Positions 2,795 through 64,000 of a stretch of DNA of 64,000 bases are shown one piece after another. Position 1 is the first letter of the stretch. Each line of letters begins with the position of its first letter. The position numbers were made by a program, and so were the translations under genes. The notes under the pieces were generated by a model. It did not search any database and was not told the DNA's origin. It worked only from the letters and a program-made list of their open reading frames with translations. The DNA lies in the sequence record AP019418.1; one strand, written 5' to 3'.

Positions 2795-4438
2795 TTATTC
2801 TGCTTGGAATTTAGTGTTAATTACACTATTATAAAGTCCAGTTGCAGTATTTGCGTAACGCATTGCTTCACGAATAATGGAGTCATGTTTAGGTGCACTA
2901 TCTGTAATAATAGATGCTACCTTACGTGATACTTCTTCGATCTGTTCTTTAGAAACATCGTCGATTTTATCACTCTCTAGTTTCCGTGAAAGTTGATCAA
3001 CATCATCTTCAAGTTGCTTAATGGCTTTAACAATATTCCGACCGCCAGTGATAACATCAGCTGCATCATCAACCAGATTACGTAGAGCTACTGCTTCTTT
3101 CTTAGCTTGACTCTTATCAAAGTTCTTTAAAGTCACTTCAGTGCCAGGTTCTGCGGCTGTCTCATCATCCGTTAGATATACTTGAGTAGCAGTCGTAGTT
3201 ACAAGCTTATTACCCGGTAAAGTGTTAGATGTACTAGCGTAGTGTTTGAGAGGTCCATCTTGAAGTTTGTCCATCTTCTCAACTAGTTCACTAGCATCAT
3301 TACGCTCTGGATCCCAAGCTTTAAGCACAGTACCAATATTCGTTAGGTAGGTAGCATAGTCTTTTGCATATACAGATGCCATCCATTTAACGATAGGGCC
3401 ATATCCAACGTTAGCTGAAGGCTGAATGAATTTACCATTAGCAAATACGGGTCCACCATTTTTAACAGGAACCGTTAATTCACTGGGTATATTTTCAAAC
3501 TTAGCATTTTGGATAGCTAAAATGAGTTCATCAACTTTTACACTCACACGCGGTACACTATTCTTAAGACTATCCCATACGTGGCTAATAATTTCACGTA
3601 GTTTAGCAATAGCTTTCTTGATATAAGCAAGCGCCTTACGACCTAACTCTTTAATATCCTCAGTTGAAATCTTAACTGGATATAAATGACTTTTACCACC
3701 AGTCGTATAGTTTTCTAATGAGCTAGTTAAAGTATTATCACCAAGTACATGACGATGCGGTAAGAGTGCAGAATGAATAAATGCAGCTGTACTCTGACTG
3801 ATACCATTCATACCAGCTTGTCGAACAAGAGCTTTAATTGACTCTAGGGCATATGCGGTATTTAGACCTTGATTAATATCTTGCACTGCTGTAGTAACTA
3901 CTTGTGCATTACCAATGTCCATGAAATCAGTAGGTTTATCCATATCCACTGCAACAGCGATCTGTGGCACCACGCCATTATGTGCTAGTGGAATAGAACT
4001 ATCTTTAGCAGCCTGGTCAGCAATTTGCTGAGTTACTGTCTCACCACCTTGTGGATCCTCTCCTTCAGCACCTGCTGGAATAACTGTTTCAACAGCAACA
4101 TTAGGTTGTTCAGGAATAGGGGGTACTTCTGTTACTACATCTGTTTCAACTACAGCAACTGGCACAGCAGGTTGTTCGACTAGAGTAGCAGCTGGAGTCT
4201 CAACAATAACACCATTATTAGGAGTATTAACAATAGTGGTATCTGCTTCTACTGGTGCAGTTGGTGTAACACCAACATTATTGTCAGCTACATCTTGAAT
4301 AGTATTTTCAGGTACAGCGTCTTCAGAAGTGCAATCACCACTAGTCATGGCTGCTACTTTATCAACTGCTGTTTCAGGAATAGGTACCTCAGTATAGTCT
4401 TCTAGACTATCTAGATACTCATTGAGTTTAAATGTCAT
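2795..4438 (-). CDS. Inner-body protein, gp95-like (phiKZ internal head protein family)
   Basis: 547 aa; acidic N-terminal propeptide; GISQSTAAF...SLEN...ISTED block shared with neighbours. Confidence 0.85.
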   Translation of the reverse strand: MTFKLNEYLDSLEDYTEVPIPETAVDKVAAMTSGDCTSEDAVPENTIQDVADNNVGVTPTAPVEADTTIVNTPNNGVIVETPAATLVEQPAVPVAVVETDVVTEVPPIPEQPNVAVETVIPAGAEGEDPQGGETVTQQIADQAAKDSSIPLAHNGVVPQIAVAVDMDKPTDFMDIGNAQVVTTAVQDINQGLNTAYALESIKALVRQAGMNGISQSTAAFIHSALLPHRHVLGDNTLTSSLENYTTGGKSHLYPVKISTEDIKELGRKALAYIKKAIAKLREIISHVWDSLKNSVPRVSVKVDELILAIQNAKFENIPSELTVPVKNGGPVFANGKFIQPSANVGYGPIVKWMASVYAKDYATYLTNIGTVLKAWDPERNDASELVEKMDKLQDGPLKHYASTSNTLPGNKLVTTTATQVYLTDDETAAEPGTEVTLKNFDKSQAKKEAVALRNLVDDAADVITGGRNIVKAIKQLEDDVDQLSRKLESDKIDDVSKEQIEEVSRKVASIITDSAPKHDSIIREAMRYANTATGLYNSVINTKFQAE

Positions 4439-4525
4439 GTTATTTCCTCAAGGAATTTCTTTGCGCGCGTTTAACAATAAACCATAGAATTAGGTACTTA
4501 GATAAAAATGAACACTTAGATATAT

Positions 4526-6043
4526 TTATTGGCCATATCTTTCTAATTCCATATTACAAACAGCATTTCGTTGCTTTGCAATACGTAATAGGTAACTAAT
4601 TAGTGTTGCGTATTCTGGTGACATATCGGTAATAAAGCCATTAACTAAAGATATAATCTCATTTGCATCATCACGAGCACCTTTCCAAATAGCTTTAGAC
4701 CTACGTAGCTCCATGTCCTCAATGCCCTGTGCAACCTTCTTCAGTTGTTCAAGGACATCTTTTTCAGCTTTAAATAGATCACCTAAACGACGAATAGCTT
4801 CTTTATTAACTTCTAATGTTTTACGCACTTCAACAGGCGGCCTTGGCTCGATCGTGATTGTATCTGGACCATCACCATGTTTATCTTCACCAAGTCGTGG
4901 AGCATATTTATCTTTCTGGAATATAAGTTTACTATTACCAGGTAGAGAAGTATCTTTTACTTTATCTAACTGATTAGCTTCACCAATAAATTCAAAAGCC
5001 TCTTTAAACTTATCTAGTTCATTATCTTCTAAGTCGTAGTCTTTAATTAATTTAACTACTTTATCAATGTTTGATCTAGCTATATTTGGCCATTCTTTAG
5101 CTAGAAATTGACTAACTTTTGTTTCATTAGTTAAATCGTCTAAAACAAATTCATCACCAATGAATAACATTTTAGGATTGTCAATTTTAATTGACATATC
5201 AAAATCAGGTGTTACCCTTTCATTTGATACAGTTGGCTTATTGATTAAACTTTTCGCTTTTTCAATTAACTCATCAGTTTTATCTTCAACTGATTTGATT
5301 CCAGTTAGTACACGCTGTGCCGCTACTTTAGCTTGTTCAATAACATGGACTATTAAAGCAAGTATCTTTTTACCTATACTTTCAATACGTTCTTTTATTT
5401 CTTCTTGAGAAATATTTACAAAACGCATAGCGCTGCTAGGGGTTGCATTAAAATCTTCAATACTAATCTTTTCAAAGCCGATAAGCTTATCAATTGATTC
5501 TAATGTAACGTGCATAAAAGCAGCTGATTGTTTAGTAATACCTCTATCACCAGCGGTATTTAATAAATCTATAAAACATTCTAAACTAGTACGCGCATGC
5601 AGTAATTGATTTAGCTGATATGTCATGTTTTGAGATGGAGGTGCATCATACGCAAAGATATTTAAATGATCATCATCACTATCTAAATCTTTACCATCCA
5701 CTGGTGTAGGTCTATTATCAGGACTTTCTCGGGTATCATGGGGTGATGCTGGATATTCTTCTGATGCGACGTATGTTTTACCAAATGAATCAACTTCAGT
5801 AACTAAACCACGATCTGATTTCCAATGGATATTAGGTTTATGTGCTTCTTCAACATCTAACCCATTATTAGTTGCTTTTACATCATTTGGTAATTCATCA
5901 ATTAATTTGGCAGCTTCTTCTGGTTCTTTAGATATTTGCTTGTCGTCTGTAGCAGCGTGCTTTAGTTTGGCTTTCGCGACTTTTTCTTTTACTTCGACAA
6001 CACCATAACCTTCTAAACTATCAAGTAACTTATTTAAGTTCAT
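4526..6043 (-). CDS. Internal head/ejected protein, gp94-like
   Basis: 505 aa; GITKQSAAFMH...ISQEE paralog block; GAGG RBS. Confidence 0.85.
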   Translation of the reverse strand: MNLNKLLDSLEGYGVVEVKEKVAKAKLKHAATDDKQISKEPEEAAKLIDELPNDVKATNNGLDVEEAHKPNIHWKSDRGLVTEVDSFGKTYVASEEYPASPHDTRESPDNRPTPVDGKDLDSDDDHLNIFAYDAPPSQNMTYQLNQLLHARTSLECFIDLLNTAGDRGITKQSAAFMHVTLESIDKLIGFEKISIEDFNATPSSAMRFVNISQEEIKERIESIGKKILALIVHVIEQAKVAAQRVLTGIKSVEDKTDELIEKAKSLINKPTVSNERVTPDFDMSIKIDNPKMLFIGDEFVLDDLTNETKVSQFLAKEWPNIARSNIDKVVKLIKDYDLEDNELDKFKEAFEFIGEANQLDKVKDTSLPGNSKLIFQKDKYAPRLGEDKHGDGPDTITIEPRPPVEVRKTLEVNKEAIRRLGDLFKAEKDVLEQLKKVAQGIEDMELRRSKAIWKGARDDANEIISLVNGFITDMSPEYATLISYLLRIAKQRNAVCNMELERYGQ

Positions 6044-20053: not shown

Positions 20054-20057
20054 CGAA

Positions 20058-20088
20058 ATAAACCCTCCCGTAATGGGAGGGTTTTATG
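20058..20088. terminator. Bidirectional terminator
   Basis: AAACCCTCCC-GTAAT-GGGAGGGTTT-TATG. Confidence 0.8.
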
Positions 20089-20156
20089 ATGTGTCGAAGT
20101 TTATGTTAGCAGTAATGATCAATTGATAATATTTAATTAGGAATACCTTCCATTTT

Positions 20157-20534
20157 TTAATATCCTTCATTAAGTAGTTCTGCTAGAGCACGTGCCTGTG
20201 AAATATCAGTAGAAGCAAAAACATCAGAAAGATAGTTATCATGTTCTTTTGCATTCTGACGCAATTCATCCATTAGATGTTTATTAGATACCGCCCATAC
20301 TTTCCACAGATTTTTATAATCATCATATTTGGGATTATACCCGTCTAGTGGTGGTTTTCCTTTACCAGCTTTCCAATGGTTGGAGTATATGCGATATCCT
20401 TTACAATCTAACTGCCAAGCTTCCTCAATTGTTCTGCCATCAGGAAGCCTTGCGTAAAGAGCCGAGAATCTTTTGTCACCAACAGATGAACATTCATATC
20501 CTCCTCGGCGCTTCCACTGATATATTACTTTGGG
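20157..20534 (-). CDS. Start-less 125-codon open frame (conserved phage hypothetical type GGYECSSVGDKRFSALYARLPDGRTIEE); candidate -1 frameshift extension of gp82
   Basis: Open from CCC 20534 to TAA 20157. No ATG/GTG/TTG for about 85 codons. Fills the gap up to the terminator. Missing from ORF track. Confidence 0.7.
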   Translation of the reverse strand, partial: PKVIYQWKRRGGYECSSVGDKRFSALYARLPDGRTIEEAWQLDCKGYRIYSNHWKAGKGKPPLDGYNPKYDDYKNLWKVWAVSNKHLMDELRQNAKEHDNYLSDVFASTDISQARALAELLNEGY

Positions 20535-22441
20535 TTCTTATAGGTATTAATAAACTTCTCTAGCAGGGTGTCCATTTTAGGAGCACCCATGATCTTCTGT
20601 GTGATTTCAATAGCATTAACCCTACCACCTGTTAAGTTTACGCCAACTTCACGGCGATGGTGTTCACTAATTCCTTCCATCATTGAGAATTCCATCACAC
20701 ATGTTTCACGTGCAATATTTAGAATCTGACTAACGTTAGGATATGTCGACACGATGTCAAGGTCGGCGATATGACAGAAGATTAAGGTTTTATAATTCGG
20801 TAAATCTTTAACACACTGCAATCCATTTGGACCTGCCATGTATGATGGTAGTGTAACAATCCAATCATTATGGCCAATAACATATTGATCAAGTTCATGC
20901 ACCATCTGATCTGAACTTGAACCAATGACACATGGCTCTGGTCTATTCAAATACCAGAAGTGCATATCGTCACATAGTCGTTTTGGGTTAGAACTAAAGT
21001 TCTTATAGTCAGATGCCTTAGAGAATAGACTTATAGAGCGACCAAGGTCATTTACTTGTTCATCAAGTTGTTCTAGTCGAATGGAGTCGATGATGTTATA
21101 AAGACCATATTTGATTTTATGCTTAGTCTGCATCTCACGGTGCCAATCGATACCACCAAGATGTGCAGTTTCTTTAAAGGTTAACTTACCAAATTCCATT
21201 ACATATCTAATAGAATCACCATAGGTAAAGTTATCATTTAATATAAAATCATCCACCGGTACCCATTCATTACTACCTACATTTTTAATATATTTAGTAA
21301 TAACGCCGCCTGGTCGGTCAACTAGTTGTTTATTAAAACCTTCAATAAAATCTTCTAAGTCCTTATCATTTTTAATGGTCGTGGATTTATCGATGTTTAG
21401 TTCTTTTCTAAGAATAGACTCTAACCGATAGTTAGGATCACGTCCTTTAGCTAATCGAGTTACTCGATAAGTTGACATAGAATCGATACATTGAAAACTA
21501 GAGGGTGCTGTAATCCAATGCCATTGATCCTCCGGTCCTTTAGATTTAGTGACCCCAGATGCAGTGGTGGTCATAGGTTCATCAATCTTAAAATGGAAAT
21601 ACCTATAATTCTTAGGTACCGATGGATCAGAAAAAACATCAGCTGGATTAACACCATAATGTTCTAATGTTTTTAAGATTCTACCAATGTCGAAGCTAAT
21701 ATTCCAGAATGCGAAGAAATCTGGTTTCCAGGTATGTAGTCGTTTAAAACATTCAATAATAATATCTACTGGTGTTTCAACAACCATTACTTCAATATCT
21801 AGACCACGTTCTTTAATTAGATGTGATAATACCTCTTCTTTTTGTGCTTGTTCTAATGTCTCTTTCACTGGATCTTCAATATCACTAACCCATCGTTTTA
21901 AATAGGCTAGGAAAGCTTTGTTCTTATGTGTAACTGACATACAGATAATCTGGCCATCGTTCTCAGCTTCATAAACGTTGGTTTCGATGTCACCGCCAGC
22001 AACAGTGTTTAGAGAGATTAGACCAGGATAACGTTCTTGATAATCATGCTTCAGATAACAGGTTGAACTAACATCACTGCCATATAGGTAAGGACTACGC
22101 GCTAGTTGACGAAGAGATCTAGCCGAATAGTCACCTAGGATTTTACTAATCTTACGTTTCATGTCAATTTGAGTTGACATGTATTTAACTAAGTTACGCT
22201 CATATTCGTAATCTTTCTTTTCTTTATGGTTACGCATTCCTTTTGCGGTAATCCAAAAAGGACGCTGGTAGTTTTCCCACATCCTTAAATTATTTGCAGT
22301 TGTACCATCTTCAAAATGAATTCGTTCTTTAACGAAATGCGCATCTGTAAACTTACCAAATTGATCAGTACAATAAGTAATATGTTTGGCTTCAATGCCC
22401 TTAATCTTTTTCTTATTTGTAACCTGTTGTTCATTAGACAT
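20525..22441 (-). CDS. Split family-B DNA polymerase, N-terminal part (3'-5' exonuclease + motif A), gp82-like
   Basis: ExoI GDIET, ExoII WNISFD, ExoIII YNIID, motif A DLDIVSTYP. Confidence 0.85.
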   Translation of the reverse strand: MSNEQQVTNKKKIKGIEAKHITYCTDQFGKFTDAHFVKERIHFEDGTTANNLRMWENYQRPFWITAKGMRNHKEKKDYEYERNLVKYMSTQIDMKRKISKILGDYSARSLRQLARSPYLYGSDVSSTCYLKHDYQERYPGLISLNTVAGGDIETNVYEAENDGQIICMSVTHKNKAFLAYLKRWVSDIEDPVKETLEQAQKEEVLSHLIKERGLDIEVMVVETPVDIIIECFKRLHTWKPDFFAFWNISFDIGRILKTLEHYGVNPADVFSDPSVPKNYRYFHFKIDEPMTTTASGVTKSKGPEDQWHWITAPSSFQCIDSMSTYRVTRLAKGRDPNYRLESILRKELNIDKSTTIKNDKDLEDFIEGFNKQLVDRPGGVITKYIKNVGSNEWVPVDDFILNDNFTYGDSIRYVMEFGKLTFKETAHLGGIDWHREMQTKHKIKYGLYNIIDSIRLEQLDEQVNDLGRSISLFSKASDYKNFSSNPKRLCDDMHFWYLNRPEPCVIGSSSDQMVHELDQYVIGHNDWIVTLPSYMAGPNGLQCVKDLPNYKTLIFCHIADLDIVSTYPNVSQILNIARETCVMEFSMMEGISEHHRREVGVNLTGGRVNAIEITQKIMGAPKMDTLLEKFINTYKNPK

Positions 22442-28959: not shown

Positions 28960-28970
28960 AAAAAAATAAA

Positions 28971-29006
28971 GACAGGCCCCTCTCCACATGGAGAGGGGTT
29001 TATGTC
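28971..29006. terminator. Bidirectional terminator
   Basis: CCCCTCTCCA-CA-TGGAGAGGGG with upstream A-tract and downstream TTTATG. Confidence 0.8.
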
Positions 29007-29009
29007 GCC

Positions 29010-29153
29010 TTACTTACGTGCAAAGCTAGCTACAAGACCTTTGATAGCTAGAGCGACCATCCAGGCCGTTAACCCCTTCATTGGGCGGATATCAACCCGT
29101 TCTTCGATATCCAGATTGCCCTCACTATTGATTACCTCAATTCGTACTTGCAT
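29010..29153 (-). CDS. 47-aa small protein MQVRIEVINSEGNLDIEERVDIRPMKGLTAWMVALAIKGLVASFARK (missing from ORF track)
   Basis: AAGGAG RBS 6 nt upstream of ATG; stop directly before a terminator; hydrophobic C-terminal helix. Confidence 0.75.
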   Translation of the reverse strand: MQVRIEVINSEGNLDIEERVDIRPMKGLTAWMVALAIKGLVASFARK

Positions 29154-29212
29154 GGTCTACTCCTTATCAGGGTGGGATATGATATTCAAAAGTCTTTTGA
29201 TATAAAGATGGC

Positions 29213-29245
29213 ATATTACCCCACCAATAAAAGGCGGGGTAATAT
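29213..29245. terminator. Terminator hairpin
   Basis: ATATTACCCCACC-AATAAAA-GGCGGGGTAATAT. Confidence 0.75.
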
Positions 29246-29248
29246 TTA

Positions 29249-29443
29249 TTAAACCATCAGATATCCTAATGGGAATAAAGCAAAGAAGCCATATAAAACA
29301 ACAAGCAGTGTCTTTTGGCGAACATACCGGGATTTAATACTATCTTTATCTAAGTCAAACTTGACATAAAGATAAATCTGATAACTTTTATATCCCATAC
29401 TAGCCACAAGGGCTATTACTATAAGTTGACACAAAAAGACCAT
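29249..29443 (-). CDS. Small membrane protein (2 hydrophobic segments)
   Basis: 64 aa, hydrophobic N- and C-terminal helices with charged loop. Confidence 0.55.
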   Translation of the reverse strand: MVFLCQLIVIALVASMGYKSYQIYLYVKFDLDKDSIKSRYVRQKTLLVVLYGFFALFPLGYLMV

Positions 29444-29498
29444 AGTGGGATGCTCTTATTATTAGAGAACAATGATCAATTGTTCTTACATAGCATGT

Positions 29499-29690
29499 CT
29501 ATTTAATATGCATGATTATCATATTAAATAACCACAACCCTAACATAAGGGTAAACATACTGCAAATCAAGCCACTTACAATCATTGCTTTTTGTTTGAT
29601 TGTTTTAGCAGCAGCAAGAAATATAATTGAAGTTATTAATCCACTAAATGCAATTAATAGTGGTACTAAAAATAACAATACCCGAGCCAT
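29499..29690 (-). CDS. Small membrane protein (2 TM)
   Basis: 63 aa, AGGTG RBS, two long hydrophobic stretches. Confidence 0.7.
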   Translation of the reverse strand: MARVLLFLVPLLIAFSGLITSIIFLAAAKTIKQKAMIVSGLICSMFTLMLGLWLFNMIIMHIK

Positions 29691-29702
29691 ATAGACACCT
29701 CA

Positions 29703-34727: not shown

Positions 34728-35034
34728 CGTTATGTTCAGGTAAGTTCGCTACGCTTACCCCGCCTCTCGTATTGCAGGCAGCTGCATGTCACCATGCAGA
34801 CCAGACTATATCTTAACCTTCACTCTAGGTGGTCAGGTCCCTCCCATTTCCACTCGCTTGAGTGTACTCCGCGTAACCGGATAGTCGTTGAACGTTCAAT
34901 CCATTTCTGGAAAGCTTCGCTGCTGATTGTCTCATTGAGATGTCCCAGCAATTAGAGAGGATTTACTTGACTCTTTCGAGATCAAGCAGGCAATTTGACA
35001 ATATCCATTCCTGAGAGATGGATGGATATTAATT
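34728..35034 (-). ncRNA. Group I self-splicing intron, 307 nt, no endonuclease ORF
   Basis: Core P AATTGCTGGGA, Q AATCAGCAGC, R GTTCAACGACTA (34882-34893), S AAGATATAGTC (34804-34814). 5' exon ends in U, intron ends in G. Splicing restores FHGG|KGVI. Confidence 0.92.
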
Positions 35035-47424: not shown

Positions 47425-47850
47425 TCAGATACTGTACTCATATACCCAACATAGATTAAATGGATGTTGCATAGGTAAGTTAAATGTATCTAGTTCCTGA
47501 CCGATCCAATTGACAGCTTTTGTAACACCTTCAACAGTTACAGTTAATTCAACATGGATATCATGTTCAGGTGCAGTCACCACAATAGTGATTGGATCAT
47601 CATGTTTAATACGGAATCCAAACTTAGGGTGATGGAATCCCGCATACTCACCTTTAGTATTTTCTAGAATACATTCAAATAGATTAGTTTCTTTATTAAG
47701 TTTAAATGTAACTAGTTTATCTGAATCTTTAAGTAAACCATTATCCCCAAATACATTGAATCGATAATGCTTATGGCAGATACCAAGTGTTTTTGGTACA
47801 TCATGGGAATTATCGATTTGCTTAGTACATTCATTACATTTACTATTCAT
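47425..47850 (-). CDS. Hypothetical protein, gp58-like
   Basis: 141 aa; N-terminal CxxC...CxxH possible Zn site. Confidence 0.65.
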   Translation of the reverse strand: MNSKCNECTKQIDNSHDVPKTLGICHKHYRFNVFGDNGLLKDSDKLVTFKLNKETNLFECILENTKGEYAGFHHPKFGFRIKHDDPITIVVTAPEHDIHVELTVTVEGVTKAVNWIGQELDTFNLPMQHPFNLCWVYEYSI

Positions 47851-47862
47851 CTTTATTTACCT

Positions 47863-48246
47863 TTAATAGATTTGTTTATCAAAAGAACAATTGATTGGAA
47901 TAGTGATAACTTCATTAGTAATTACATGTTTACCTGTCTTTTTAAAGAATTGTGCAAATTTTGAAGTAGCTGGAATTACAAGGGTATCATCCCGATCATT
48001 ATTTGACATATTGTAAAAAGTAAACTTACCGTCTAGGTTAAACCTAATGCACCACTTAATATTTCGTATTTTGAAATCTATACCAAATCTTAAATGACCA
48101 TCAATCAATTCAGAACCACCGTATTCATAAGCTCCGGTGAAATTCCAATTAATTTCTGCGAATTGGAAAGTTACAGGATGTTCGCCATGTTCATCTTGTA
48201 TGTAGTAACCATCATGAGCTTTCCAATAGATGACTAAATCATGCAT
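47863..48246 (-). CDS. Hypothetical protein, gp57-like
   Basis: 127 aa, GAGG RBS. Confidence 0.7.
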   Translation of the reverse strand: MHDLVIYWKAHDGYYIQDEHGEHPVTFQFAEINWNFTGAYEYGGSELIDGHLRFGIDFKIRNIKWCIRFNLDGKFTFYNMSNNDRDDTLVIPATSKFAQFFKKTGKHVITNEVITIPINCSFDKQIY

Positions 48247-48294: not shown

Positions 48295-48516
48295 TTATTT
48301 TGCTTTTAGCCATTCTTCTAATGGCGGTAAATACTTCTCATGCGCCCAGTTAATAATTGTTTCTACAACAGGACCCTGTAATTCAAGGTTACCTGAGATT
48401 TCATGTGGTTCATCAATAGATAGAACCCATGTATGTGGAGCAATGCGTTCAGTTGCTTTAGTTAAATACACATCAGGCATTAACGTAAGATTCAATTGAT
48501 CGCCGTCAAAGTCAGC
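48295..48516 (-). CDS. Non-virion RNAP beta' N-terminal subunit, exon 2 (gp56.1)
   Basis: Begins ADFDGDQLNL; splicing completes catalytic NADFDGD. Confidence 0.92.
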   Translation of the reverse strand, partial: ADFDGDQLNLTLMPDVYLTKATERIAPHTWVLSIDEPHEISGNLELQGPVVETIINWAHEKYLPPLEEWLKAK

Positions 48517-49888
48517 CGTATTGTTCAGTATCAGTCGTTAATTGATACCCGCACCATTACGTGCAGCTCTAGCTCTCGCTAGAAGACCAGACTATATCTT
48601 CACCCTTCCTTTCGGAGTGGGGTGTCTCCCATTTCGAGTCACTTGACCCTACATCCTATTTCTAGGACCGGTGCACCTGATACCGTAATAGTCGTTGAAC
48701 CTTCTCCTATTCCTAAATGGAATGTTACGGAGCTTGGCTGCTGATTGGCCCTACCTAATCTTTTTCAAACCTTGGCTTTGTCTTTCGACTCGCAGTGGTA
48801 GATTAGTTTAACAGGATATCCCAGCAATTAGAGAGAACTCAACCCAACGATTACTCATTGGGGGAACTAGATTTGATTAACTTAATAAGGTATTTATCAA
48901 GCACCCCATTCTTTTCAAAGATTGCTCTTCGAACAGTATTCGGATGCTTAATACCGACATCTCTTGCAAAGTGTGGAATACTCGGATACACTTTGGTAGT
49001 GTTCAAGATGGTGTCGGTTACTTCAATTGGAGTACCTTTTCCATTACTAGGTTTTCCAAATGAGGCTTCAATTTCTTTCTGAGTATATTTAGGGAAATCT
49101 TCAGGATTAGCAGTATATGAGAATACCAGACCATCCATGATTTCCTTACTACCTCTAACTAGATGGTAATAGGCTTTATTACGTTTAGTACCTAGTGCAA
49201 GTTCCATTTCTGCTAAGTTATGAAACACATGTAATGTCTTAGTCTTATAGTCTAAAACATAAACTGTCTTGGTACTTTCACGATCAGCAATCTTAGTCTC
49301 ACCGGTAATAAATTCAAATGTGAATCTATTTCTATACGGCTTAGTCTTATGGTCACGTATAATAACCCAAACCGTATTTTTATTAACTCCTAATACCCGA
49401 GCAAGTTCATTCATCGAGTAATAAGTAGTCTTTTCACCAGTGGTAACATCAGTTGCAATTACCCGTCTATTTTCTTTTCTTAATCCATTTTTGTAAGCAT
49501 GCTCAATGTTTTCACCACGAGTCATCCATTCCAAATTGGATGGTAAGTTATTATGTTTGTTGCCGTCTTTATGATTGACTTCATATGTTGGTCCAGGAGA
49601 TGGACCATGGAATGCAGTACAAACTAGAATATGCGCTCCCTTACTTTTTGATGTCTTTTCATCATTTTTTGCACCTATATTGAGATATGTCCCAATTGAT
49701 GTTTTAGTAAGGAAGAAATTACATATTCTATTTAACCGCTTATGACGAATCGTTCCTAAGTTACTAGCCTCATAAGCTGAGTATCCAGGAATATCTCGCC
49801 ATTCAATTTTAAATGAAGCCGGATCAAAGACGGACACTACTCCGTTTTGTTCCATTGTCTTTTACCTTATTTGGTTATTCAATTGTCC
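48517..49888 (-). mobile_element. Group I intron (1372 nt) with HNH homing endonuclease in the P1 loop
   Basis: Same P/Q/R/S core (R 48689-48700, S 48590-48600). IGS GUUGGG (48848-48843) pairs with 5' exon CCUAAU with a G-U at the splice site. Terminal G at 48517. Confidence 0.92.
48851..49855 (-). CDS. HNH homing endonuclease (NUMOD4-HNH with three C-terminal IENR1/NUMOD1-like repeats), gp56-like
   Basis: WRDIPGY..YEASNLG, VNHKDGNKHNN..NLEW..RGENIEHA, repeated VxxxD....xYxSxxExAxxLG units. Confidence 0.92.
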   Translation of the reverse strand: MEQNGVVSVFDPASFKIEWRDIPGYSAYEASNLGTIRHKRLNRICNFFLTKTSIGTYLNIGAKNDEKTSKSKGAHILVCTAFHGPSPGPTYEVNHKDGNKHNNLPSNLEWMTRGENIEHAYKNGLRKENRRVIATDVTTGEKTTYYSMNELARVLGVNKNTVWVIIRDHKTKPYRNRFTFEFITGETKIADRESTKTVYVLDYKTKTLHVFHNLAEMELALGTKRNKAYYHLVRGSKEIMDGLVFSYTANPEDFPKYTQKEIEASFGKPSNGKGTPIEVTDTILNTTKVYPSIPHFARDVGIKHPNTVRRAIFEKNGVLDKYLIKLIKSSSPNE

Positions 49889-51133
49889 ATTAGGCGCTTT
49901 AAGGCATAAAACTGACATGCTGATAGAATTATCATTAATGTCATCTTTTACTTTAGTAATAAAGAACTGCTGCGTAGATCCACGTTGAAGCGTTGGATTT
50001 CGGTGAAAAGTACAACCCATCCCTTTATAAGGGGCTGCTTCTGCAATTAGCTCTTTAAATAGATCTGCAATGATTTGGTTATATTGAAGTACATTCTCAT
50101 ATACAAATGAGAATGCTTCACGAGTTGTCATGTTAAACTTTGCTTTTAGTTTATTGGTTAGATGATACTTTAATAATTGACAACCTACCCCCCAAGGGAT
50201 ATGTAGTTCATCATAATCATGCGGGTCACTAATAGAAGTGATTACTGCACGTGCCGTAGCGTTGAGACGAGCACCAAACATGTGACGCCGAGCAAGACCA
50301 GGCTTTTGAGCAATTCGTGATTTTGCGTAGATCTCGTAGAACTGGCCATATAGTCTTAGTCCTCGCATAGTCCTATTCTGAGCTTTAATTGGACTAAGTG
50401 GTACAGATGATGCATCAATACTAGCGAAGGTTAAGGTAGCATCAATTGCTGCTTCAATTGGTTTATCTAAGTAAGTACCAGATGTGGTTGATTCTGCTAC
50501 GAAACAGAGTTTAGAAGGAACTGGTAAATATTTAGGGAATAACTTATCTTTATTCTGAGCAACGAATTGAGCGAATTCGGATTTATTATTAGAGATAATA
50601 TTTGCATCTAGTAGGAATTGGAAGATCTCATTGAAATTATCAATGAAGTGATTTAATCCTCTTTCAAATCCTCGATGCAGTAGCCTATCTACTTTCCTGC
50701 GTGTTTCCTTAGAACCAATAGATTCTACATCGTATCGATAAGAAGTATCAGTTAGATATGCTAAGAAATCGAATTCTTTAGTTACTAGATATCCGGTTAG
50801 CATAATGATTAAACGTGGGTTAATTAGGCTACGTACATGTTTTGGTGTACGAACCCACATTGATGGTTCGATAGGACGGCTAGAAGTATTGACAACTGGA
50901 GTATTACAAATATCACAGATTACTCCGAGTTTATGTGCGTCTTCGATTGCTCGACAATCACAGCTTACACTACTTTCAATTGCTTCTGAATCTTGGAAAT
51001 GAGAATAGAAATGCCTATCAAATTCTTCTTTCTCATCTGAGTTACTCGTATTGTAATCATTGGCATAAATTCGTTTACCCGTAAATTGATCATGAACTTC
51101 ATTATGATCAACAACTTTGGCATAAAGACCCAT
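49889..51133 (-). CDS. Non-virion RNAP beta' N-terminal subunit, exon 1 (gp55); spliced product 488 aa
   Basis: Zn ribbon CDC...CDIC, RRHMFGAR, HRNPTL, ends KAPN; AGGAG RBS before ATG 51133. Confidence 0.92.
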
Positions 51134-51159
51134 ACCAAACTCCTGTTTATCGATTAACA

Positions 51160-51203
51160 AAAAAAGGAGATATAAGCGGCCCCCGAAGGAGCCGCTTATA
51201 TCA
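51160..51203 (-). terminator. Strong intrinsic terminator between chmA and gp55
   Basis: GATATAAGCGGC stem (12 bp) followed by TCC and a 7-U tract on the minus strand. Confidence 0.85.
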
Positions 51204-51528
51204 GTTTTTACAATGGACCACCAACGGAGCCTGGCCCGAGCCTAGCGTCATCTACAAAGCTTAACCTCCGCTCTTCTTTGTAGCATACCGGCACTAGTCT
51301 CATTTACCATCCATTGTAGTTTTTGATCACACGTTACCTTTTGAGTAACTCCTTTCGGTTAAGTGATCTATCATCCTCGTGTAGTGATAGGTCGACCTAG
51401 ACTAAGTCCACTAGTCGATTACTTCACGGAACCTACTCCTAACCGTTATCACCGAAGTGAACCAGGGTCGCAGTATTAGAATCGGGATGTTACTTATTTA
51501 ACATCCCTATCTACCGAGGTATTTCCTA
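51204..51528 (-). ncRNA. Candidate structured non-coding RNA / chmA 3' UTR element
   Basis: At least six stems in ~320 nt with no ORF. Confidence 0.6.
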
Positions 51529-53409
51529 TTAGTACCAGGTACCCGGTGCATTATAGGAAGGAGCGCCGTAAGTTTGACCCATGCTGCCAGCCATGCCAAC
51601 TTGTGCACTACCAGAAACAGCCATGTTACCCATACCGGTGTAACCAGCGAAGCGCTGTTGACCGAAGTTGGTAATTAGGTTTTCCATGGTTACAGTTACA
51701 CCAGCTGCTGCTGCTGCGGCATCCATTGCGGTGATGAATTTCGGGTTAAAGGTTAGACGACGAGCACGACCAGTATAGGTAACGTTACCTAGGTACATCT
51801 TGTCGAAGCCTTTACTGTTATTCATACGACGCACAATGTGGTCATTACCTACCTGAGTAGCATACCAGGTCTTCCACTCTTGGTCATTACCTTCAGACAT
51901 GTTCATGGCACCTAGAACGTCGAGATCACGACGGTCGCTTAGTTCACCATGCTCATCAGTGTAGTGACCGAGGTCTACTTCATGATGGTTGTCAAAGATA
52001 ATCGGACCAGCTTCAGCTAGATTATAGAACTGACGGAAATCAGTGCCGTATAGGTTAGTTAGAGCTTGGAAGATCAGACTAACTGCACGAGCTTGGTTTA
52101 CGCCACCAGCTGCATCTAGGACGACTTGCTCAATAGCTGAGTTGTCTCCCATTGGATCGATATCGATCTGGAATGCAGGGTTCTGGTTAACCATCTTGTT
52201 CATTAGCATTACGAAGTTGCTGTCGTCTGCCATGAATGCTTCGGTGCGAGTTTCAATCGCTTTACCTAGCTCTGAGTAATAACCAAGTGCACCAATATCA
52301 CGCATCTTGCTAGTAGCGATCTTCGGCATTAGGGTACGAGCCCATGCCTGGGATGCAGTTGCACGATACGCATTACCGAGTGCGAACAGCCACATTTCTA
52401 GAGTCCATGCTTGGATCCAGGATGCCTTACGAACGTCAGTGATAACGATGTAAGGAGTGAACTGCGGAGGTAGAGCTGCACCAGGTAGAGTTACGCCAAA
52501 CATACCTTGTTGCTGGCCAGTGGTCGGAGTCCAATGTAGATCTACGAATAGACTAACTTGGTTTAGCTGGCTATCGGTATCATAGAACTCGTTCTCAGGT
52601 ACGTTGGTTTTCTTACCACGGCTAGTGGAGATGACCAGGTCAGAACGGATCGGATTACCACAGCTATCTTTAACCGGAATACCATTGTAGTCTAGATTGC
52701 AGGTAAGCTGTTCGTTTTCTGCTTTGATGTGGGTCGCAATAGAGAACGGAGTCTCATTGTTACGACGCGCAATAGCATCTTCACAGATATTAACAGATTC
52801 AACTAGTAGGTTCTTAACAGCTAGTTCATCTTTGAAGTCGAAGTCAGCATACACTGCACGGGGACCGGCAGATAGTACTTCTAGACCAGGGATGTTGTAA
52901 CGGTTCCGTAGGAACTCGCCGATCTTGCTCCAGTATTGAGCAGTGAACACATCACGCGGTAGTACCTTCTCTTCAATGATGTCATCAGTTAGACCATTGT
53001 TGATTTTGTGGGTACGGGGACGGATGCGAGTACCAGGTAGGTTATCGAGTACTAGAGTACGAACGAATGCCTTCATGGAACCATTGATATCTTTAGCTAG
53101 TTTAACAATGAGTAGACCAGCCATACCAACTTGCTGCGCATCGCGATCGAAACGATGGATATCGAAGTCATCAGGTAGGTCCTGATGGCGGATTGCTTCT
53201 TCTTTTACTTTAGTGAATACTTGTAGGGCATCTGCTGAACGAGCATCAGAACCATCTAGCCGGCCAGAACGGCGCATTAGGTGGTTAATGCCAGTAGTGG
53301 ACCCAGGTGCGCCAGCCGGACGTTGAGCTTGACGTTGTGCAGTGGGTTGCGGAGCCGGAGCGGTAGCTTGAGTTTGAACGGTGCCGATTTCGTTTTCGTT
53401 AACAGCCAT
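51529..53409 (-). CDS. chmA: Chimallin, major phage nuclear shell protein (phiKZ gp54)
   Basis: 626 aa, [14 protein letters not shown]..., conserved [26 protein letters not shown] segments; canonical position upstream of nvRNAP beta'. Confidence 0.93.
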
Positions 53410-63157: not shown

Positions 63158-63172
63158 TAAATGTTCAGGAAC

Positions 63173-63197
63173 ATGATATAGATCTAAAAATATTTTT
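63173..63197 (-). promoter_or_regulatory. Early-type promoter
   Basis: AAAAATATTTTTAGATCTATATCAT. Confidence 0.6.
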
Positions 63198-63284
63198 AGT
63201 CAAATCTGTTCGTGGTAAGCCGATGTATATTATACCTTAGTTGGGTATTATCTCCATCGAAAAAACGCGTACAGCGCATTATAG

Positions 63285-64000
<716 letters not shown>

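Follow-up and report, generated by a model that had tools for sequence, protein, structure and literature searches.

A modular structured RNA in the spacer between the chimallin gene and a polymerase subunit gene of phiKZ-type jumbo phages

Among described phage RNAs, 3'UTR_PHIKZ298 of phiKZ and ncRNA1 and ncRNA2 of PAK_P3 come closest to the RNA reported here, since they lie 3' of a stop codon, carry no promoter motif of their own, end at an intrinsic terminator and are conserved within a genus (Gerovac 2021, PMC8545117; Putzeys 2024, PMC10914365). The subject of this study is an element of ~320 nucleotides (nt) in the spacer between chmA, which encodes chimallin, and gp55, which encodes a beta-prime-like subunit of nvRNAP, the non-virion RNA polymerase, in a stretch of 64,000 nt from record AP019418.1 that is called the window throughout. 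We are highly confident that this element is a structured RNA under selection, encoded on the chmA strand. It likewise lies 3' of a stop codon, contains no promoter motif of its own in scans for the phiKZ early motif TATATTAC and for sigma-70-type promoters, and shares the terminator of the mRNA, but it is three times larger than the three RNAs named above, folds into three multi-helix domains where those have two stem-loops, and shows cross-genus covariation and a conservation far above that of its flanks. With GOLLD, ROOL, OLE, raiA and HEARO it has in common a multi-domain fold, conserved junctions and loops, an association with phages and the lack of a known function, whereas it matches none of the corresponding Rfam models, is smaller, is located in the 3' untranslated region (UTR) of an mRNA and has so far been found in Pseudomonas chimalliviruses only. 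Terminating riboswitches and leaders, the put RNA of HK022 and EAR are also structured RNAs placed directly upstream of an intrinsic terminator before an essential gene; in contrast to these, no mutually exclusive antiterminator pairing was found for the chmA RNA, relatives possess the terminator without the RNA, and the polymerases concerned are non-canonical ones encoded by the phage itself.

Group I introns are similar in size, have a multi-helix fold and are frequent in this phage gene cluster, which is rich in introns and HNH endonucleases. An intron at this position was rejected on two grounds: the intron model RF00028 gave no match at the locus at E<=10 while two introns in other parts of the window score 75.6 and 83.7 bits with it, and no reading frame is interrupted, chmA being full-length against Pfam and gp55 starting after the element. 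The absence of group I core motifs noted in a preliminary description of this DNA, made from the letters alone, is thereby borne out. The regulatory RNAs CrcZ, RsmY and RsmZ have a similar length and would offer a precedent for the titration of an RNA-binding protein, but counts of the sponge motifs GGA, ARN and CA in the chmA RNA equal the shuffled expectation and Rfam gives no match, and a sponge of this type was rejected. More generally, no Rfam family was found at the locus in a search of positions 50000-53000 (E<=10) or in a whole-window search in gathering mode, and none at seven homologous loci (E<=5); the only matches at the locus were terminator-like and due to chance (E>1). The RNA therefore matches no catalogued family. 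ARAGORN found no tRNA or tmRNA in 50900-51700.

phiKZ is the reference nucleus-forming phage and chmA its most studied gene, and the folded RNA attached to it was found undescribed. The transcriptome papers on phiKZ name other non-coding RNA (ncRNA) candidates, namely 3'UTR_PHIKZ298, 5'UTR_gp40 and 17 RNAs from 5' UTRs, and an RNA of the chmA/gp55 spacer is not among the candidates of their main texts (PMC8244752, PMC8545117, PMC10914365). The spacer is not discussed in an antisense-oligomer screen or in a transposon screen, both of which treat chmA and orf55, and two reviews do not mention it. The suggestion that the RNA is undescribed thus agrees with the literature searched.

The consensus fold, computed with RNAalifold from 13 sequences, comprises 107 base pairs and coincides with the minimum-energy fold of the single sequence. 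Including the terminator, the sense strand has a folding energy of -128.4 kcal/mol (z = -4.7); without it, the sense strand reaches -97.8 kcal/mol (z = -3.0) and the antisense strand -82.2 kcal/mol. This sense advantage of 15.6 kcal/mol and the many G-U pairs identify the chmA-sense strand as the folding strand. Three domains, D1 to D3, are followed by the terminator, and the preliminary proposal of a multi-domain structured RNA on the minus strand is upheld by a fold which covariation supports. The features of the element are as follows:

51376..51518, minus strand: D1, a four-way junction with three arms (RNAalifold consensus, covariance model R2, covariation)
51518-51515 with 51379-51376, minus strand: closing helix CUCG/CGAG of D1 (consensus)
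51513-51477, minus strand: arm P2 of D1 with the hairpin GGGAUGUUA/UAACAUCCC (consensus)
51475-51434, minus strand: arm P3 of D1 (consensus)
51427-51384, minus strand: arm P4 of D1 (consensus)
51325..51368, minus strand: D2, a three-way junction with helix GAUCAC/GUGAUC, junction strand UUAA and hairpins CC-GAAA-GG and GUUACU/GGUAAC (consensus, covariation)
51209..51318, minus strand: D3, a long-range helix (UA)CAAUGGAU/GUCCAUUG(UA) around two arms (consensus, covariation)
51301-51238, minus strand: arm 1 of D3, with an invariant tip (consensus)
51235-51220, minus strand: arm 2 of D3, with the invariant loop GCUCCG (consensus)
51159..51202, minus strand: predicted intrinsic terminator hairpin with a 15-bp stem (51202-51169), a UUCG loop and a U7 tract (51165-51159)

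The linkers between D1, D2 and D3 are A-rich single strands. The base of D3 arm 1 forms a variable patch in which changes are compensated, while the CGGAG of its tip and the CUCCG of the arm 2 loop are both invariant and may form a kissing-loop contact. Most stems drawn in the preliminary description recur in the consensus, that is GGGATGTTA/TAACATCCC, CGACTAG/CTAGGTCG, CAATGGAT/GTCCATTG and CTACAAAG/CTTTGTAG as well as the GATCAC/GTGATC helix around the GAAA hairpin and GTTAC/GTAAC. Two others, CTATCA/TGATAG and ACTTC..ACGG/CCGT..GAAGT, are missing from it and are replaced by the closing helix CUCG/CGAG and by GUGAAG/CU-AUCAC, both of which covary (UA to CG). A T-to-C change of the PA1C clade is uncompensated in ACTTC..ACGG/CCGT..GAAGT, whereas in GUGAAG/CU-AUCAC it is compensated by A-to-G. 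The AAAAACT flanks described on both sides of the D3 helix are present in phiKZ-type sequences but not in PA1C-type sequences or PhiPA3.

For the analysis of covariation 15 loci were fetched and aligned, and covariation was assessed across 14 phages with two covariance models, R1 for D2 and D3 and R2 for D1. In alignments fitted to these models, whose pair counts consequently lean toward the structure, 98.9% of the D1 cells are paired and 9 pairs are changed on both sides, compared with 3.4 +/- 1.2 in shuffled controls (0/500 reach 9) and at most 1 in slid controls; for D2 and D3 together 100% of cells are paired and 3 pairs are changed on both sides, compared with 1.3 +/- 0.6 in shuffles (11/500 reach 3) and 0 in slid controls. 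Covariation thus exceeds both kinds of control in D1 and in D2+D3. The D3 closing helix covaries as well (AU to GC). At least three double changes have independent origins within clades, in W10-2 (D1 arm P4), in HPP-Temi (the second D2 hairpin) and in the window and FBPa36 (base of D3 arm 1), and PhiPA3 adds five further double changes. Substitutions in stems almost never break pairs, and since almost all of them are compensated or compatible with wobble pairing, continuing selection on the RNA fold is implied. No covariation signal comes from the invariant helices, namely the hairpin at the apex of P3, arm 2 of D3 and the tip of D3 arm 1. An all-against-all scan for covarying column pairs outside the nested fold, as expected of tertiary contacts, was uninformative, as a difference between the two main clades can be enough to make any two columns seem to covary.

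The element is also an island of exceptional conservation, with ~86% identity between phiKZ-type and PA1C-type phages. In a comparison of the window with PA1C in 100-nt bins, the RNA is 83-88% identical, whereas identity in the bins of chmA and gp55 is 45-67%, for most of them 55-65%, and the ChmA proteins of phiKZ-type phages and PA1C share 48% identity. Along 50 kb of synteny with PA1C, the three highest of 347 sliding 300-nt windows fall in the RNA, with a maximum of 0.86 at a mean of 0.66 and a standard deviation of 0.044. Identity between phiKZ-type phages and PA1C is 91% at paired and 77% at unpaired positions, and all paired bases of D2 are the same; the conservation of the unpaired positions means that the sequence is constrained too and not the shape alone, which points to recognition of sequence in addition to shape. 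The RNA is hence held tighter than chimallin or the adjoining RNA polymerase subunit, and this constraint above both neighbours makes it probable that the RNA is functional. Within Phikzvirus the pattern is reversed, with 93-95% identity in the RNA and 97-99.7% in the flanks, and the extra changes are concentrated at the base of D3 arm 1, in the variable patch with compensated changes described above. Both patterns agree with a core that is frozen apart from a few near-neutral patches; they do not need horizontal transfer, although swapping of modules does occur. Co-conversion driven by homing of an intron in gp55 was rejected as the cause of the island, as the intervening gp55 exon 1 is just 55-66% identical.

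The RNA is accessory, modular and patchily distributed. BLASTN placed the element in 57-62 phage records, in a single copy in every matching genome, and every full-length match is a jumbo phage of Pseudomonas aeruginosa. The order of chmA, a strong hairpin or terminator and the beta-prime gene is kept in every chimallivirus examined, and the content of the spacer differs as follows:

Phikzvirus: 94-100% identity to the element (BLASTN)
PA1C, PS119XW, HPP-Temi, BRkr and HHBS36_1: ~85% identity (BLASTN)
phiHQ: the 3' half only (BLASTN)
PhiPA3: two short pieces (BLASTN)
D6, Noxifer, DT01, RAY and Goslar: chmA/beta-prime spacer of 84-105 nt only, with a terminator-type hairpin and without the RNA
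LucasX: chmA/beta-prime spacer of 250 nt
Psa21, 201phi2-1, Phabio and Viktualia: other structured sequence in the spacer, sometimes with orphan small open reading frames (ORFs) matching no family

Since only some Pseudomonas phages have the RNA and relatives have short spacers with a terminator, the RNA is an insertion between the stop codon of chmA and an ancestral terminator. In PhiPA3, D1 and D2 are kept with enlarged arms and the 3' part has diverged; model R2 matches the D1 of this phage over its full length (E=2.9e-10), the tips of two arms containing large insertions, and the junction strands of D1 are unchanged while the arms differ in size. phiHQ kept D2, D3 and the terminator, and a different, Psa21-like module cleanly replaces D1, so that modules have been swapped between lineages. 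Model R1 gave only partial or weak matches in other Pseudomonas chimalliviruses (PhiPA3 D2 and the D2-like region of Phabio). D2-like three-way junctions were nevertheless found 3' of chmA in Phabio (locus L020, 4409-4460), 201phi2-1 (L018, 4337-4390) and PhiPA3 (L002, 2781-2827), each with a closing helix that covaries (UA/CG/UG), a CUUAA-like strand and two hairpins. This comparison relied on an alignment of the closing helix and on single-sequence folds, as the two internal hairpins could not be aligned across genera. On their own, the Phabio and 201phi2-1 sequences adopt the D2 topology, and we place moderate confidence in the recurrence of a D2-like junction across three further genera, because the single-sequence folds of PhiPA3 and PA1C lack the small first hairpin. 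A D2-like junction may represent the most ancient core among these 3' UTR RNAs. Conserved strings of D1, D2 and D3 were sought in IMG/VR, JGI metagenomes and GTDB genomes by exact-match scans, which miss divergent relatives, and only PA7 and PhiPA3 (both IMG/VR) were returned; the remaining string matches failed the covariance model, and a single-protein search of IMG/VR with ChmA gave PA7 only.

The module in place of D1 in phiHQ deserves a description of its own. This 'type B' module lies 3' of chmA in phiHQ, a P. aeruginosa phage (L004, ~2350-2495), and in Psa21, a P. syringae phage (L017, ~4410-4555), and is ~73-80% identical between them with compensatory changes, while their ChmA proteins are 45% identical. 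It has no match in Rfam, and a 54-nt stretch of it matches sequence without annotation in Ralstonia phage RP13 (83%, E=6e-6). In 201phi2-1 the orphan ORF gp106 (L018, 4484-5050) lies between the chmA terminator and the beta-prime gene and matches the family of the PhiKZ major capsid protein, but weakly and below the threshold (22.8 bits, cut-off 27).

As to transcription, the spacer contains no copy of the TATATTAC early motif, which does occur upstream of chmA (53489), and a sigma-70-type scan of the sense strand of the spacer also returned nothing, these two patterns being the ones scanned. Because the spacer carries no early-promoter motif, the RNA would be made from the chmA promoters, in line with the preliminary suggestion that the RNA derives from the chmA transcript. 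chmA has been assigned to a multigene operon that has both early and middle start sites (Wicke et al., PMC8244752), and PHIKZ054 has been assigned to several transcription units (Putzeys et al., PMC10914365). The strong terminator that had been placed shortly before the gp55 ATG was found, its U7 tract ending 25 nt 5' of this codon; all chimalliviruses examined have equivalent hairpins 3' of chmA. By itself, the terminator hairpin is worth -25.9 kcal/mol, and D3 closes independently of it. An extra A at position 51188, in the 5' arm, which the window shares with PA02 and KEN49, makes the stem a perfect 15 bp, while phiKZ and most relatives have a bulge.

The reading we prefer, and hold tentatively, as plausible rather than probable, is that the element is an accessory modular RNA which forms the 3' UTR of chmA and serves as a protein platform acting in cis. 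Transcription would start at the chmA promoters and end at the UUCG-loop terminator, and its production would therefore parallel that of the most abundant early message. The RNA would accumulate either on the full chmA mRNA or as a nuclease-resistant 3' fragment. D1, D2 and D3 may be separate recognition modules for specific macromolecular partners, and the likeliest effect would be exerted in cis, on the stability, the translation or the placement of the chmA message. The terminator is an ancestral feature of the chmA/beta-prime junction and would pass only a fraction of transcripts on into gp55.

The phage RNA-binding protein ChmC (gp67 in phiKZ) is the only candidate partner with experimental backing. 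Its enhanced crosslinking and immunoprecipitation (eCLIP) coverage peaks between chmA and gp54 of PhiPA3, which the authors read as small regulatory RNAs (Enustun et al., PMC11077065), and this spacer of PhiPA3 carries homologues of D1 and D2. The earlier idea of a ChmC ligand thus gains one indirect published support, from PhiPA3. If ChmC binds it specifically, the RNA would be the first defined RNA ligand of this proposed mRNA-handling factor of the phage nucleus.

Several points weigh against a platform in cis. ChmC binds most phage mRNAs with little specificity, and the eCLIP peak may therefore only mirror abundance. The near-frozen RNA, next to proteins that are ~50% identical, is better explained by an invariant and possibly host-encoded partner than by a fast-evolving phage protein. 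Part of the covariation signal, indeed much of it, comes from a single clade split. Furthermore, the RNA is missing from D6, Noxifer, DT01, RAY and Goslar, so that an effect on chmA, if there is one, must be dispensable or lineage-specific. The same five phages, with their terminator-type hairpin only, speak against the core role in the shell, as a scaffold or in export that had been considered in the preliminary description.

The main rival to a platform in cis is a decoy or counter-defence RNA that acts in trans, which would ride on the strongest early unit, be freed as a stable 3' fragment and sequester a conserved Pseudomonas RNA-binding protein, nuclease or immune sensor. It is favoured above all by a sequence that is nearly frozen across phage genera of one host genus while proteins diverge, and by a locus that behaves as a variable accessory hot-spot in which other phages have different RNA modules or orphan small ORFs, and it would also agree with the patchy distribution and the swapping of modules between lineages. 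GGA, ARN repeats and CA sponge motifs are not enriched, though, no processing site or target is known, and DT01, which infects P. aeruginosa, does without the RNA, so that we consider a decoy possible but unlikely. Binding of a host factor would, if true, mean an RNA-based mechanism of takeover or counter-defence. A broader and equally unlikely conjecture would make the chmA/beta-prime junction of Pseudomonas chimalliviruses a hot-spot for RNA weapons: interchangeable modules (D1, D2, D3, the Psa21/phiHQ type B and the 201phi2-1 type), which may be as abundant as chimallin already in the first minutes of infection, would target conserved host machinery or immune sensors in trans, or would tether the chimallin message to the nascent compartment via ChmC. 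Such a hot-spot would amount to an RNA layer of jumbo-phage takeover that protein-centred screens have missed.

A leader or attenuator of gp55, by which the RNA would sense a signal or modify the phage polymerase as put of HK022 does, tune read-through and set the ratio of ChmA to nvRNAP, is suggested by a riboswitch-like layout, with a large fold, an intrinsic terminator and, 25 nt on, the ribosome-binding site and start codon of an essential gene without a promoter motif of its own, and by a D1 whose junction strands are constant while its arms vary in size, as in ligand-binding cores. The pairing of either terminator arm with upstream RNA is no better than shuffled, both in phiKZ-type sequences and in PA1C, the hairpin is very stable and D3 closes independently, and a terminator/antiterminator switch was rejected as no competing pairing was found; in addition, phages without the RNA share the layout of a terminator followed by beta-prime, and 201phi2-1, Phabio and Viktualia have other genes between the two. 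We regard a sensing leader as doubtful. The attenuator idea of the preliminary description is accordingly not supported for a regulated, riboswitch-type device, while a fixed, unregulated attenuation of read-through into gp55 is plausible as a property of the ancestral terminator and not of the 320-nt RNA. The alternative of a generic stabiliser, in which stable helices slow 3'-to-5' exonucleases on the chmA mRNA without any specific partner, would suit the position in the 3' UTR, the very stable terminal hairpin and the need for very high chmA expression; 77% identity at unpaired positions, invariant loops and junction strands kept across genera would be superfluous for a generic barrier, however, and a single hairpin suffices in relatives, which renders this alternative improbable. 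That the element is a selfish or relict sequence, such as an insertion resembling a miniature inverted-repeat transposable element (MITE) or a decayed gene or intron spread by recombination during co-infection and useless to the phage, is a very improbable explanation. The inverted repeats that bound D3, the AAAAACT on both of its sides in phiKZ-type phages, the swapping of modules and the higher variability of the RNA than of its flanks within Phikzvirus could be read in this way. Yet the flanking direct repeat is missing in PA1C-type phages and PhiPA3 and the 'inverted repeat' of D3 covaries as an RNA helix, for which reasons a MITE-like origin of D3 was rejected; stem substitutions are almost all compensated or wobble-compatible, the element is single-copy wherever it occurs, and Rfam detects two introns elsewhere in the window but none at the element. 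Least credible of all is an element that works as DNA, for instance as a site of replication, packaging or protein binding: although a conserved non-coding island could be of this kind, compensatory changes preserve base pairs, many invariant G-U pairs correspond to A-C mismatches on the other strand, and the sense fold is better than the antisense fold.

The surroundings of the RNA are those of a phiKZ-type genome. Over the spacer and its flanks, identity is 100% with Pseudomonas phages PA02 and KEN49 and 99.7-99.8% with phiKZ AF399011, in which the spacer is 47527-47896. In the window the chmA/gp55 spacer extends from 51528 to 51134 on the minus strand (395 bases), and the coordinates given in the preliminary description cover it correctly. 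The chmA stop codon is 51531-51529 on the minus strand, and the RNA starts ~11 nt 3' of it. The neighbouring features are the following:

51529..53409, minus strand: chmA, encoding chimallin (626 aa; Pfam PF25677 over residues 1-626, E=0; ORF list)
51131..51158, minus strand: ribosome-binding site AGGAG and ATG (51133) of gp55 with a short spacer (start codon kept in the alignment; no phiKZ early-promoter motif)

By the annotation of relatives, the gene that starts at the ATG at 51133 is gp55, the N-terminal beta-prime-like nvRNAP subunit. The spacer contains no ORF of at least 40 aa, and the longest ORF on the sense (minus) strand has 31 aa; SL2, PA7 and PA1C-type sequences lack its ATG, the lengths of indels between clades are not divisible by three, and a protein-coding gene was therefore rejected. 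The description of the stretch as free of ORFs holds in the sense that no conserved ORF lies on the minus strand between chmA and gp55, and its reported enrichment in GC was reproduced, with 44.8% against a window mean of 37%, which is within the top 5% of 317-nt windows. The deposited records of KEN49, HPP-Temi, HHBS36_1 and Psa21 show small coding sequences of a 'hypothetical protein' over the structured RNA on either strand (L001, 3052-3323; L005, 974-1415; L007, 274-714; L017, 4341-4583). As these ORFs are not conserved, the annotations are probably spurious, which has the practical consequence that several deposited genomes would carry spurious small proteins across the RNA. In the PA1C record the beta-prime start is placed 35 nt downstream of the ATGGGTCT start common to all relatives (L003, 2883 vs 2918) and is probably mis-called.

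Further observations concern introns and other stretches of the window. gp55 is split by a group I intron (48310-51133, minus strand), with exon 1 reaching from 51133 to ~49888, an HNH/NUMOD endonuclease ORF at 49855-48851, an Rfam Intron_gpI core (RF00028) at 48888-48567 and a remaining PA1C-homologous coding piece at ~48516-48310. In PA1C, PhiPA3 and phiHQ the beta-prime gene is uninterrupted (1431-1467 nt), and in the Goslar record an Intron_gpI is annotated directly after the beta-prime homologue. A second group I intron matches RF00028 at 34782-35010 on the minus strand with 83.7 bits and is presumably the intron already known from the nvRNAP gene gp71-73. ORFs of at least 80 aa are also lacking in other stretches of 470-840 nt, at 28960-29702, 20054-20524 and 63158-64000. 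The second most conserved stretch of the window in the comparison with PA1C lies at 20600-21200, where identity reaches ~0.80 over 300 nt at the mean of 0.66.

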